Below the pieces are notes generated by a model that was not told where the DNA came from, did not search any database, and saw nothing but the letters and a program-made list of their open reading frames with translations. Of a DNA stretch of 64,000 nt, positions 50,122 through 57,600 are shown one piece after another. Both the position numbers and the translations under genes were made by a program. Within the stretch, counting starts at the first letter, position 1. Each line of letters starts with the position of its first letter. This DNA is from Pelomyxa schiedti (lineage: Eukaryota > Protista > Evosea). The stretch is taken from NCBI GenBank assembly GCA_020536535.1, contig JAHLWZ010000505.1:1-64000 (forward strand), given 5' to 3'.

Positions 50122-53100
50122 ATGGCAGGGAGTGATGGTGCTACGGAGGACGGTTGGAACTTCGAGATTGGGGAAGGTGAAGATCTGTCGCTCAACAGTG
50201 CGGCACAACCTGCTGTGTCGTCTCAAACTAGCAGCACAGAGACACAGAGTACTACTACAAGTGTTACGGCACAACCACCTGTTGTCACTCCTCCGGAAGA
50301 GAGTGCTACTGTGTTGCTTAGTGGGAGTGCGTCGGTCGAAAAAAGTGCACCTGCGGTCGCACCCAATAAATATTCGAGCAGTAGTAATGTGCAAAAGGAG
50401 GAGTCTGAGCAACCCTTTGAAATACTTGACTTCACTTGTGCCTCCCCATGGGAAAAATTTGTGTCTCAAATTGAAACCATTCTACGCTCTTGGAAAGGCA
50501 GTCCCGTTTCTGACTCAGTAAATGTTTTCAATTATCTTTCATGTGGACACTCAAACACCCTTTCCATAGTGTTCTCAATATGTTAAATGGAATGGCCGGT
50601 CCTTTTCCATTGAATACAGAATCAACTCGAAAGTGGCAACTCCAGGCACTTCATTAAGCACGCATATTAATAACATGGGACTCGATTTTTGCGCCAATCC
50701 TCTTCAACGCTGGTTTCTTTATTTTTTTCCGCTCCCTCATCCATTTGCTGATTGATATCAGGTTTGGAACACCCGAATTTTTACACGTCATTCCGCAAGA
50801 TAGCGCCAGTGTTAGCCCCTGTACCAATTCTCAACTTATAAGCAGCTTTTCTATCGCAGCAGCCAACTGCTCCTGGTACATTGGATACCGTATGATTGTA
50901 TCTAAGGTTCACAGGCACACACCCATTTTTGTACCCTATGGACCAGCGGCCATGTTCGACTATGTTGGAGTGTCCAGAGAAGAGTTTAAAACCGCACATT
51001 TTTCGTCACACACCATGCAGGCAGCACCTTACGCTCTTCGTTACCTTGATGGCCTACTTCCTTTCTATTTTTCGAAAATTGTACCAATTCCTTCCATTTG
51101 TTCTAGCGTCACAAATGCACTGCAGGGAGTATCGGGTACTCTTCCAGATAAGCTCCATATCCGTACTCTTTTTACATATCTACAAATTGGAGGACCACCC
51201 ACTCTTTGGCGCTTTCCAGGGTATTCTTCTTTCACTGAGTATTCATTTGACCCTTTCTAGTCACGCAGATGACCCAACAGCCACAACTACTGGTCAGCTG
51301 TCACCTCCTTTATGGGGTCCTATTGAAGATCCTGTCTCAAGTAACTATCTCGTATTTTTCGCGTTAATCCCTCGAAAGAGGCTAACATAACTCATCGGTA
51401 CTCTGAACATAAGACTTACGACTACAACTGGAGTGGCAACACACAAACCGTTTGTCTTGCTAATTTATTATTCCCTTCCTCATCTATGCCAGCTGTTACT
51501 GATAATTCTTCCATTACGGAATACACCTTGGACTCGGCTCAGCATTGCTATATAACTTGCAAATTTGATGACAGGTAGTTGCATTCTCACACTTTGTCCT
51601 AATTCTTTAAATCAGTCTGAGGTGCCCTTTATCACGAAGTGTCCGTGCCTTGATGCTTGGAGTCATTGATGTCACCCCATTTACCTCAATATCCCAAATA
51701 ATCAACAGTATGCACTTTTTTTTGTTGTTTTGTATCCCCGTCCCACATTCCACCAGCAACCAAGCAAACATCTGATAGCACTTTGAAAGCAATCTCTAGG
51801 TCTATATCCAATACATTTAACACAACTCATATTCCCATGAAACAAGTACGTTTTATCACCCCCAAACTCACTAATATAATGCAGGAACTAGAGGAAATAA
51901 TGTTGCGCGTCTTCTCGTCTACCGACAATTTCACTCCAGTCACATATAACCGACTGGATATTCAGAGTGCTCCTCCTTTGTCCCTTCCATCCATCCTTGT
52001 ACTGCACATGCTACGATTTCCTGGTTTAACAGGTTCAGTACTTTTTCCCATTGTTTTACTTGTCAATGCATGCCAGGTATGCTGCATATTTGGCGAGAAT
52101 TTGTGAAGCAATTAAGATATCACTGGGAGAGCAACCTTCCTCTTCCCAGTGTTACTCAGTCTCCAGAACTTGACTGTTGTCTCCTGTATCAAAAACTGCA
52201 AATGGTGCAGCCTTTTAGTGATAGGCAAATCACTAACATAGCATGGTTATAGTTAAATTACTGCCGGTGGTACTCCAACCATTTTGGCAATGATACAGCA
52301 AAAAGTAATGATGTAATCAATGGCTGGGATTTTGGTGCCGACCTGGAATCTCATGACACCCCTCGTCTTCTTCTCACCGGGGAACCAATTGTTGCTCCTG
52401 TCACGCAGGTGTGTTTATTTGGTCATTCAAGTATTTCACATAGCTGAAGGAAACTGGGGTTATGACAGAAGATATGATAACTGAGTATGAGTCTGTACTT
52501 TCAAGACTTGGAACATCAATGGAAGGGTCCCGTTTGCGCGCTAGAATGCAATCTGCTTCTCTCCTCTCTGGTAATATTAATAATGTCATCTTACACTGAC
52601 AACTTCTAGATATGCAAGCATTTAAGGCAGCCAATCCAGGTAGCATGCTGGAGGATTTTGTACGTTGGCATTCCCCGAATGATTGGATACCTGATGGTTC
52701 TGGCGGGGGCCATCTTAGCAGTAGGATGACTGGATCAACCCAAAACTTATGGCGGAGTGTATGGGAGGTTTATTCACATTTCTAGAGTTAAAATGTAACG
52801 CCTAGCAACAGGAAGCACAACCGCTACCAGTATGCAAACAACCACCTCTGTTTGATTGTAAGAAAGAAGCAGCGAAGGTACAACTGTCACATTGACACAC
52901 GTCTTACATTTTCCAGGTTCTGCATTACTTCGAAACAATTACTCCATCAGATCTTCTAAAGCAGTTTGTTATTCCTCAATTTTTGTTTTCCTAACCAATT
53001 TACGTTATTAGGCTCCTTGGAATAATTTTCACTACGTTACATCACTTTTTCACAACTCCACCAAGTCGTTCTCCCTTCGTAGTATACCTAGGTCTCACTT

Positions 53101-53677
53101 ACTCGTAGGTTTCGAGCTACAAGACGAATTAAATAGTGCACACGAAGCATACACTGGAAATTATACAGCAGTAAAGAACCGGGCAGCTGCATTTGAGGAT
53201 TCCGTAAGACGGCTTTGGAAATCCCCTACAAAGTAAGTAACCAGCATAACCGTAGCTTTAATTCTTTTGTTTAGTCCCTCCTCCGATTATGAGGCTATCT
53301 GGTTGGCTCTAGGCAGCCTGGAATTAACAGCAGCAAGAGCTGTCTCTTTAATTCATAAACTCGGTTCTCTTACGGCCGTTGTGGAGTCCCTACTACTAAC
53401 GAACAATTGTGCTCTCACATCCTCTTCTGAGAGCAGTGAAGTGATAACTAGCTTCAAGAACGTAGAAGGAAGTATGCCCCATCCACATCCTCGCAATTTT
53501 TCTCGTATTTAAAAAAACCACACAGAAATGCCAGACGCAGAACAGTACGAGTTCCTTGTGCGCTGTGAAACTCCAGGACACGTTCCGCACACAACATTGA
53601 TGCACCGTTTCTATGCCGCAGTGATACCGAGTACCTTTGCTCCAACAACGGTGAGAGTCGCCTACAGTTACCTCTGA
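50122..53677 (+). CDS. RAB3GAP1: Rab3 GTPase-activating protein catalytic subunit (multi-exon)
   Basis: DFTCASPWEKFVSQIE; LRARMQSASLLSDMQAFKAANPGSMLEDFVRWHSPNDW...HLSSRM; C-terminal HRFYA...VRVAYSYL*. Confidence 0.92.
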
Positions 53678-53784
53678 GTCTCAGGCTCTATTTTTGCGTC
53701 CTCGGGCCGCAGTTGCGATGACTTGATTTTTCACTAAACACAGTCTTTTTAATCAAAGTTCGTTCGCAATTTTATTTTTTTTCA

Positions 53785-54261
53785 CCAGAGAAATTTGCAG
53801 AAACGGAGTGAGGCACTGGCGGAGTGGTGTTCCGCAACACCACATCGTTTTCCGCGGTGTGGTGTGCGGGTACCCTAACCCTAAGTTCAGGGCTATGTGC
53901 CGCTCCAAAAGAGGGTTTTTCCCGACACTTCTTTTTTGTGCTGAGTGTCGGGAGCAAGCCAACCCCTCCCCTCTGTCCTTTTTTCCTCGTAAAAAAGGGT
54001 TGGCCTTCGCCGGAGCCCTGTGGTGTTTGCCTGCGTCGCGCGCGGCGTCTGCCCCCGTCCTGCGGGCGAGAGCGGCGGCAAGAGGGCCTGGGCGAGACTG
54101 CCCCCCGGATATTTCCTGGGGGGCATGAGAGGTGCGTCCTCGCTTCTCGCTCTTGGCTGTCTTGTTGTTGCTCTCGCTTGTGGGTGGGGACCTTGCACGG
54201 CCGCCGTGTGCGTCGCGGGCGGACGCCTCACGCCGCTTCTGCGTTTCTCTGGCCTTTTTTT
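53785..54261 (+). ncRNA. Candidate telomerase RNA (TR/TER), ~470 nt
   Basis: 5'/3' closing helix 53785-53814:54225-54252. Core-enclosing helix 53816-53824:54005-54013. Boundary hairpin 53831-53870. Template ACCCTAACCCTAA 53872-53884. Pseudoknot 53907-54004. Long G-U-rich arm 54025-54224 capped by a three-way junction with a P6.1-like hairpin at 54129-54141. Confidence 0.75.
53872..53884 (+). other. Putative telomerase template (two copies of CCCTAA; specifies TTAGGG)
   Basis: ACCCTAACCCTAA lies 1 nt downstream of a 16-bp hairpin and is single-stranded in the hand-derived fold. Confidence 0.7.
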
Positions 54262-54647
54262 AAACCTAAAAAGAAAAACGCTTCTCTACTGTTGGGTTTT
54301 TTCCTTCCAAAAGGGAGAACAAACACAGTCGTTGATGCCCCTCTACAAAGCCTCTTTGTGCGCGCTGTTCTGGTAAAAAAAAACAGAAAAAGACACGTTT
54401 CCGAAAGCACGTTTTGTCCTTTTGCGATAACAAAAAAACACTAGACTAGAACAAAAGACAGCGTTCCGGTCTGTTGAATATTTTATTGCATTTCGTGGCA
54501 GGTGTGGTAGGTGCCAACTTGCGCTTTTCTTTTTTTCTCATTGTGATCGATCTGATGGGCGTACGGCGAAAGGCTTTCCACGTTGGATCTGGGTGTCCCG
54601 CTGCGTTCGAAAAAAAAAACAAAAAAAACCCCACTTAAACAGACGTG

Positions 54648-57600
54648 ATGGCGAGTACGACGACAAGCGCACATTGCAGACAGCCGTCCCTCACCACCAA
54701 AGCCGGCAAGTCCCTACCAACCCCTCCCATCCCGCGTCGTCCTCAGTCATGGGTATCACCGACCACTCAAACAGAACCCCCGCAGCCCCAACAATCACAA
54801 TTTCACTCGCCATCACCACCTCCACAACAACAACAAGAAACCACGACACCCTTACGCACAACCCCGCCGTCGTCTCCCACAATTCCGATTCCCCCGCCCC
54901 GCCCCCCCCGCCTCCTAATGGACGACAACGACCAACAGCAGTTGCAGCAAACTCAGCAACAAAAACAAGAACAGTCCCCAGTCCCGGCCGCCGTCGTGCC
55001 TGTCTCCACGTCGCCTCCTTTGACAACTCAGCCGGGGCGCAGGCTTCCTGCTCCTCCGATGATGCCTGTGGCAAACAGAAGCAGAAATTCGCGGCTGTCA
55101 ACTGAGACGCCGTCGGCTATCGCGGCGGAGATCTGCGGTGCATCTTTGGGAACAAAAGAGGGTGGCAGTGGTGGTGGTGTTAGCGGTGGAAATAGTAGTA
55201 GTAGTGGGGGTGGAGGCTGTTTAAGTGTTGTTAGCGGTGGTGAAGTGACTTTGTTGCCGGAGCCCGAGGTTGGCGATTCTTTGTCGCCGTCATCGATTGA
55301 GGTTAGTGGCGTGAGTGGCGATGATGCTGACGAGATCCGCAGGAGATCTTCGTCGTCTCCCGATGATAGTTTGGCTCACAGCACTCCGCCGTTGTCTCCT
55401 ACTGTTTCGCCGTTGTTGGCATCACCTTCGGCGTCTGGCGTTGTGGCGGTTTCTCCTGTGTCACCTCAGTTGAGCCCTTCTCGGTCTCCCTCATCATCAC
55501 CATCTATTGCTTCCCCTAGTTCGTCGCCTTGCTCATCCCCGGCTGTTTCCCCCCTTCTTCCGCCTCAGCCGATCCGTCCTGTACCACCGCCTAGGCCAGC
55601 ACAACTTTTATCTAACGTAGTTCTACCTGTTATTCCCCCAAACTTGCCTAAACGCCATACCGCTACTCCAAGTAACTCAAGCACGATCAATTCAGGGACT
55701 GAATCACCTGCTACTGCTGCTCGCCAGTCTCCAGATAGATATGGCACTGCACGCGCAGCACATGCTCTTTATTCCCCAAGTCCAACCCAGCCCAATGACA
55801 CTACCACAGGGAATCCTTCACCTCGGCTACACCATAGCTCATCGGAGGCTGTTTTATGTTCACCTTCACCCCCACCACCACTGCCACCACGGTCATCATC
55901 GCCTCCGCATAGATCTTCTTCCCCATCTCCACCGCCTCCACTGCCACGTAGGTCGTCCTCACCATCCCCCCCACCGCCTCCCCCTCCAAGGTCTGCATCC
56001 CCGTCGCCACCTCCACCACCTCCTCCGCTTCCACCATCTCCACCCCTGCCACCCCCATCTTTTATTCCACCACCACCACCTCCCCCTCCCATGCGTCTGT
56101 CTATTATACCCCCTCCTCCTCCTCAATCACCCAAGCCACACCCTGTTTATAGATTATCTGCTTCCCCAGAAACCACCCCAACATCTCCACATCTTCATAA
56201 TGCCAGATCTAGCTCTCCTGTTTATACACATGCAACCTTACCAACTCTGAATTTATCTTCTAGTAGTCCAGTAACATCCAGCACATCTCCTGAAGCCAGA
56301 GCTCTGCAGATGCGGCAGGTTGGATACTAGAAATATCCTAAAATGCACAAACATCTTTTTTCCCATAGAACCGCCGAACTGTTCTTCTGCACAATGCCCT
56401 AACACGTGAAGCTCTAAGCAATATGCAATTAGAGACATTATCTGCTTTAGAAAAGACTTCAGCACCAGATCCCAGTTCAAAAGTAATTCCAGCTCCAGCT
56501 CCTGCTCCAGCTCCTGCTCCAGTTTCAGCTTCAGCAGCCTCAACTGCGATACAACCAGTATGTTACCCTTGAGGTGACCACTTTGTAATTTTCCCCAAGC
56601 AACCAATCCCAGAGCCTACATCAAAAAAGGACAAAAAACGCAACAAGCGGTATGGGGTCTCCCTATGACTTTAGGGAATCACCATACCTCAGGTTCATAG
56701 GGCAGTATGGCGTTTACTCGAAATTTTCGGCCTATCACAGTGTATGGCTGAAGCAAGCTGGTTTAGTAAGTGGATTTTGCACCTTCTTTTCTCTCAATGG
56801 GGGAAAAATATTAGGAAAAAGAGAGAGAGATGAACTTCTTCCAGAAGAAAATGCAAAAATTCCTTGAAGAAAACGAGGTAAAGGGACAAGACTGTGAGTT
56901 CCTTACAAAATGGGTTGTATTAGGCCACATCCTGGAGCAAAGCTTGGATTAAGAGTGTTGTGAACACTGACGAAAATGACCTTTCTGTTGGTGACTTTAC
57001 AACTCATTTTCGTCAAATTCCCGAGTGGGTTAGAACGAGACTACTCAAATTGTTCTTATATTCCTAGCATTCAAAAGCATCCTTTATGCAAGGCGTATTC
57101 ACAATTATTGAACACTTTGTATACTGCTGTCACAAATCAACTTAAAGGGAACAATGATATCCAAGTAGTGAGCTCGACGATAGCTGATTTAACTTCAAGT
57201 TGCTGTGGTATGTGACAACTACAAAAAAAAAGCTATTCCCAAGCATAATGTACTTCAGAAAAAATGTTGGATGTCACTTTAGCGAAGCTGTATTCTCCAC
57301 TTGAGCCAGTTTGTGCTTTGGTGGAAAGAGCCTTATTGGATGTTATTTTTGAAAAACTAAATGACATTTTATGGCCGTATTACACGCAAAAAGTAATGTC
57401 CTTTTGGTGATCACACCAGACTCACTTTCTCCAGTATTCCACTGAAGATAGCCAATTCAAAGCCAAAGCCACACTTTTGAAAAATGTACCTGCAGCTGGA
57501 ATTGGTGTTTCTCCACGGTTCCAATTACTAGATGTACTGCCTCTTCCCTATTTTTACTTTCAACTAATGTCAAAAAGCCCAAAGCATTACTGGTTCCGTA

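Follow-up and report, generated by a model that had tools for sequence, protein, structure and literature searches.

We analyzed a 64,000-nucleotide stretch of the genome of Pelomyxa schiedti, an anaerobic archamoeba of the supergroup Amoebozoa, and refer to the whole stretch as the window. Within it, a strongly folded unit lies on the plus strand downstream of a protein-coding gene, whose product is on record as the P. schiedti rab3 GTPase-activating protein catalytic subunit (RAB3GAP1). The stop codon of RAB3GAP1 (53675-53677) is in the last exon of the annotated protein, and the closing helix of the unit follows after a gap of 107 nt on the same strand. Given this spacing and the shared strand, the unit may belong to the RAB3GAP1 3′UTR, either as an unrelated element or as an RNA matured from the mRNA. 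Folded as RNA, positions 53785-54261 (477 nt, plus strand) have a minimum free energy (MFE) of -282.3 kcal/mol and a z score of -13.9. Two domains, a core containing a template-like sequence and a long arm, both sit within the closing helix, which delimits a unit of about 470 nt (Table 1).

Table 1. Features of the folded unit, in window coordinates
Feature	Position	Strand	Description
P1-like closing helix	53785-53811 with 54228-54252	+	23 bp in 4 segments (fold of 477 nt)
Core-enclosing helix	53812-24 with 54005-17	+	12 bp; shuts the template domain
Hairpin in template-boundary-like position	53826..53870	+	Helices 53831-36:53865-70 and 53838-48:53854-64
Template-like sequence ACCCUAACCCUAA	53872..53884	+	Two TTAGGG-complementary repeats plus one base
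U/A-tract region	53907..54004	+	U-tracts 53916-20, 53932-37, 53979-84; A-tracts 53907-10, 53991-96
Hairpin inserted in U/A-tract region	53919-54	+	From the 477-nt fold
Whole long arm	54022..54227	+	206 nt; identical fold alone and within the 477-nt unit
Basal shaft helix	54025-35:54214-24	+	11 bp
Second shaft helix	54037-47:54202-12	+	11 bp
Contiguous helix	54059-83:54160-84 (encloses 54059..54184)	+	25 bp, 8 G-U
Three-way junction	54090..54152	+	Pair probabilities 0.85-1.0; tip helices 0.82-1.0
P5-like stem	54090-97:54145-52	+	8 bp
Junction strands	C54098; UGA 54126-28; GCU 54142-44	+	
P6-like hairpin	54099..54125	+	11 Watson-Crick pairs (8 + 3), one-base bulge, 4-nt loop
P6.1-like hairpin	54129..54141	+	Stem GAGG/CCUC of 4 bp (54129-32:54138-41), loop UGCGU 54133-37, probability 0.96
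U7 run	54255..54261	+	2 nt 3′ of the closing helix

In the 477-nt fold, a 4-nt linker joins the core-enclosing helix to the long arm. Inside the core, the first hairpin stops 2 nt 5′ of the template-like 13-mer, which is on the same strand as the long arm and 137 nt upstream of it. The tracts farther downstream, read together with the secondary-structure fold, suggest that 53907-54004 has the potential to form a pseudoknot or triple helix; their U/A composition is typical of telomerase pseudoknots. The U7 run is a possible 3′ end of the candidate RNA. As predicted by the fold, the closing helix and the core-enclosing helix match the canonical two-domain blueprint of telomerase RNAs (PMC4993307, PMC5175330). 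Two properties of the fold are among the points against a telomerase RNA: the MFE fold of the 477-nt unit pairs part of the template, and a shaft of 64 bp separates the tip of the arm from the core.

Strand-specific pairing of the long arm

The initial annotation had described 54025-54224 as a long, G-U-rich arm ending in a CR4/5-like three-way junction. All the helices that it listed are present in the minimum-energy RNA fold, among them the contiguous 25-bp helix with its eight G-U pairs. The arm so defined has 84 pairs, 17 of them G-U, and an MFE of -148.4 kcal/mol (z -11.55 relative to 200 dinucleotide-shuffled sequences); within the full unit, its base gains 3 bp, extending it to 54022-54227. 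In the shaft, stacked helices are separated by small bulges and, at 54048-58 / 54185-54201, by a larger internal loop. Besides the two 11-bp helices and the 25-bp helix, the shaft has three short helices and one of 4 bp, and the arm terminates in the three-way junction.

When folding was scanned along all 64 kb with a sliding window, the arm emerged as the strongest plus-strand outlier. The sole outlier comparable to it, at 501-800, folds as stably on the minus as on the plus strand and represents a near-perfect DNA palindrome. The near-perfect inverted repeat there, at 606-689, comprises 28 nt at 96% and 21 nt at 95% and has the same stability on either strand; this DNA-level palindrome may be a fold-back element or may have arisen as an amplification chimera.

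A comparable DNA-level origin of the arm itself, as a palindrome, a fold-back or MITE-type element, a whole-genome-amplification chimera or the precursor of a small-RNA hairpin, is highly improbable and has already been largely refuted. The assembly comes from multiple-displacement-amplified single cells (PMC8887013), a treatment that yields inverted chimeras, and the strand-symmetric palindrome elsewhere in the window also speaks for such an origin. The two halves of the arm, however, are only 74% complementary at the DNA level. With the 5′ arm aligned to the reverse-complemented 3′ arm, their divergence comprises 15 G.U oppositions and a single A.C (binomial p 5e-4). Moreover, the locus occurs once in the genome, the tip branches into a junction instead of closing in a simple loop, and the outer helices of the unit pair sequence from both sides of the arm. 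We rejected a DNA palindrome or inverted amplification chimera on the G.U bias and the limited complementarity.

The reverse complement folds worse than the plus strand, reaching -99.5 kcal/mol (z -5.4) and thus being weaker by 49 kcal/mol. From the 15:1 excess of G.U over A.C, the DNA complementarity of 74% and the weak minus-strand fold, we infer that the arm has been shaped by selection for RNA pairing on the plus strand. The earlier proposal of a plus-strand, RNA-specific fold rather than a DNA palindrome thereby gains quantitative support.

The branched tip and its likeness to CR4/5

The P5-, P6- and P6.1-like elements follow each other in this order from 5′ to 3′ in both the MFE and the centroid folds, whether the arm is folded alone or in the 477-nt context. 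The P5-like stem, the P6-like hairpin and the GAGG/UGCGU/CCUC hairpin all form in the MFE fold where they had been placed by the initial annotation. The last of them is preceded by A54128 and followed by G54142. Except for one G-U in P5, all pairs of the tip are Watson–Crick, whereas the shaft tolerates G-U.

In the published definition of CR4/5, P6.1 combines a stem of 4 bp with a loop of 5 nt that follows the consensus 5′-NUNGN-3′, of which vertebrates and Neurospora require both the U and the G (PMC3592445), and TERT binding depends on an invariant A located between P6 and P6.1 (PMC4993307). The candidate hairpin has the same stem and loop lengths, and A54128, directly 5′ of its stem, corresponds to the invariant A, a match that carries little information. 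The loop UGCGU deviates from the consensus: it keeps the G at position 4 but has G in place of U at position 2, both as originally noted in a comparison with the human P6.1, GA[AGAG-UUGGG-CUCU]G.

We evaluated this likeness by holding P5 fixed and shuffling the 47 inner bases 3000 times. Two hairpins were formed by 30% of the shuffled tips; a 4-bp/5-nt hairpin in the 3′ position appeared in 1.2%, and in 0.23% when G4 was also required. The native tip was 3 sd more stable than the shuffled ones. The likeness to CR4/5 is unlikely by chance, yet it carries little information and was recognized post hoc. What stands of the claimed CR4/5-like junction is its layout, the 4-bp/5-nt hairpin, the A and the G4; a hairpin of this kind in that position forms in roughly 1% of the shuffles, and position 2 of the loop lacks the U. 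As this U is absent and the function is a candidate one, we do not file the arm as canonical CR4/5: it is a CR4/5-like variant.

The arm might also belong to a telomerase RNA with a tip that only looks like CR4/5. In that case, which we consider quite improbable, it would serve as a scaffold for accessory or biogenesis proteins, analogous to the arms of yeast or to ciliate stem IV with its La-family protein and 3′ U-tail, and the presence of a 4-bp/5-nt hairpin would be fortuitous. The lack of the essential loop U, the distance of the tip from the core and the U7 tail at the end of the unit agree with such a role, as does a low-information likeness that about 1% of shuffles reproduce and that was chosen after being seen; P6.1 has also been repeatedly lost within animals and is absent in plants and trypanosomes (PMC8480181, PMC5175330). 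A pure scaffold is harder to reconcile with the arm being the sole domain besides the core, since every telomerase RNA studied for a second, distal TERT-bound element has one (PMC5175330, PMC4993307), and the near-complete Watson–Crick pairing of the tip on a G-U-tolerant shaft suggests a tighter constraint at the tip.

The candidate shares the P5-P6-P6.1 order, the 4-bp/5-nt third helix, the junction A and the loop G4 with the CR4/5 of vertebrates, filamentous fungi and fission yeast, and like the vertebrate and fungal elements it is located 3′ of a helix-enclosed template core. It differs from them in having G and not the essential U at loop position 2 (PMC3592445), in carrying its P5 on a 64-bp G-U-rich shaft, in being followed by no H/ACA or Sm-type 3′ domain and in being known from sequence and predicted fold. 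As a template-distal helical element, it also resembles the eCR4/5 of trypanosomes, echinoderms and protostomes, the stem-loop IV of ciliates and the P4/5/6 of plants. These represent the second TERT-bound domain, a common feature of telomerase RNAs (PMC5175330, PMC4993307), and all are without a P6.1-type stem-loop (PMC4993307, PMC5175330, PMC8480181). In ciliates (stem IV) and trypanosomes (eCR4/5), the element is a simple stem-loop, whereas the candidate tip is branched and includes a stem-loop of the P6.1 type.

Genomic setting of the template-like sequence

We searched the P. schiedti assembly (5337 contigs, 52,367,397 bases); for this species, a single-cell genome of 52.4 Mb in 5337 scaffolds has been published (PMC8887013). 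The 12-mer CCCTAACCCTAA gave 35 matches at 26 distinct sites genome-wide, fewer than the reversed control pattern, and the motif by itself therefore means little. For comparison of the flanks, the equivalent 480 nt were folded in template orientation at all 25 other sites. Their z scores ranged from -3.0 to +1.7, while this locus had -16.2 and is the only one of the 26 sites with a strongly structured flank.

The telomere repeat of Acanthamoeba, another amoebozoan, is TTAGGG (PMC11995660), and by analogy TTAGGG is plausible for P. schiedti, but not more than plausible. In the assembly, (TTAGGG)3-4 occurs as short interstitial runs only. Three-repeat arrays of (TTAGGG)n had 9 matches genome-wide versus 23 for the reversed control (GGGATT)n; with the control being more frequent, the short TTAGGG runs are no evidence of telomere identity. 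No telomere arrays were present at the 20 contig ends sampled. Contig C16 terminates, within 290725-290924, in at least 50 consecutive T.

The RNA-binding domain of TERT was found above the Pfam cut-off in two adjacent exons on contig C931 (32777-33290), indicating that P. schiedti has telomerase. About 2 kb from these exons and on the same strand lies a U6 snRNA gene (C931:35196-35301, minus strand).

We derived an snRNA promoter element from 10 U6 and 10 U2 loci of the genome, in which the copy numbers are about 20 for U6 and 30 for U2. The motif CCCA[TC]AA[TC] is common to all 20 loci examined, where it begins some 60-65 nt 5′ of the coding start, and is a candidate for the proximal sequence element (PSE) of P. 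schiedti snRNA genes. No copy of it lies within 52500-55000, and an snRNA-type promoter was rejected on this basis. Compared with the U7 run that follows the closing helix of the candidate, the U6 genes terminate in T9-10, and a tRNA-Leu(CAA) gene (L008:1190-1276), located about 230 nt upstream of a U6 gene, is directly followed by T5. The candidate contains internal runs of T5, T6 and T6, which, set against this single tRNA gene ending at T5 (n = 1), make transcription by Pol III unlikely.

The unit could be a structured element of the RAB3GAP1 3′UTR or an unrelated intergenic noncoding RNA, with the CCCTAACCCTAA run being one of 26 copies in the genome that are there by chance or as interstitial repeats. 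We regard this explanation as rather unlikely. It draws on the short same-strand distance of 107 nt from the RAB3GAP1 stop, the missing snRNA-type promoter element, a 12-mer that is not rare and a TTAGGG repeat that is seen as short interstitial runs and forms no arrays at the 20 contig ends. The location of the 12-mer on the RNA strand, after a hairpin and before U/A tracts, would however have to be a coincidence, and a helix-enclosed core beside a second long arm is the blueprint of telomerase RNA. The other 25 CCCTAACCCTAA sites, furthermore, are all unstructured, and a closed 470-nt fold of -282 kcal/mol would be exceptional in a 3′UTR element.

Searches for relatives of the unit returned no homologue. 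With E values up to 10, the region 53760-54280 matched no telomerase RNA family in Rfam, giving only chance matches (Pseudomon-1 and miRNA families); telomerase RNAs diverge past sequence recognition, and no Rfam match is therefore expected for a new lineage. The translation of a chance ORF at 53824-54441 found no protein relatives and no annotated protein of the species itself. Among 1.84 billion representatives, one RAB3GAP1 exon matched the species' own protein alone. Full-length and region searches with RAB3GAP1 recovered no close relative, the best matches being no closer than vertebrate proteins, and a Logan contig (L083) with a distant RAB3GAP1 orthologue was intronless and not syntenic. 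A metagenome scan for the pattern template–gap–P6.1-like hairpin gave zero matches, and a second scan, with an 18-mer spanning the P6.1-like hairpin, gave 11, all on GC-rich bacterial contigs with unrelated flanks and thus attributable to chance. Protein-anchored synteny, ORF translation and the two metagenome scans accordingly revealed no orthologous locus of the candidate RNA. In the literature searched, there was no report of an amoebozoan telomerase RNA, and for Dictyostelium the presence of a telomerase RNA component is stated as unknown (PMC6592521).

A candidate telomerase RNA

The template-like 13-mer, the enclosing helix, the U/A tracts, the uniquely structured site and the presence of TERT in the genome form a context compatible with telomerase RNA, and we consider it probable that the locus encodes one. 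Our main reading, to which we give a probability of roughly 0.55, takes the arm for the template-distal, CR4/5-like stem-terminus element in a candidate P. schiedti telomerase RNA of about 470 nt (53785-54252/61, plus strand).

Under the main reading, the junction and the P6-like hairpin would be bound by the RNA-binding domain (TRBD) of TERT, with the 4-bp/5-nt hairpin positioned at the TRBD-CTE interface, where it would activate catalysis in the manner of the vertebrate and filamentous-fungal CR4/5. The tip would come within reach of the core-bound enzyme only through a bend of the 64-bp shaft at the internal loops (54048-58 / 54185-54201), and the G-U-rich sequence of the shaft would act as a spacer selected for RNA pairing only.

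The candidate RNA is probably a Pol II product and possibly matured from the RAB3GAP1 transcript. To our knowledge, maturation of telomerase RNA from the 3′ end of an mRNA has so far been seen in Ustilago only. The telomerase RNA of Ustilago maydis is processed from the 3′UTR of the Emi1 mRNA (PMC9564094), and the candidate likewise follows immediately after a protein-coding gene, shares its strand and lacks a recognizable promoter of its own. The host gene differs, being RAB3GAP1 and not Emi1, and the linkage, known here from the genome sequence, could be coincidental.

More tentatively, and with considerable doubt, the locus may represent the first telomerase RNA of Amoebozoa, with an arm that contains a true homologue of P6/P6.1 and a co-evolved loop, and possibly also with maturation from the 3′ end of the RAB3GAP1 transcript. 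Amoebozoa are the sister group to the clade of animals and fungi. The P6.1-bearing, canonical CR4/5 is documented in animals and fungi and not in plants (PMC8480181). If the homology were true, the origin of CR4/5 would shift from the ancestor of animals and fungi to the common ancestor of Amoebozoa and Opisthokonta. A branched, P6.1-like element in an archamoeba would make the age of CR4/5 directly testable, using an RNA of about 470 nt and reconstitution from two fragments, and the candidate would supply a seed structure for telomerase RNA searches in other amoebae.
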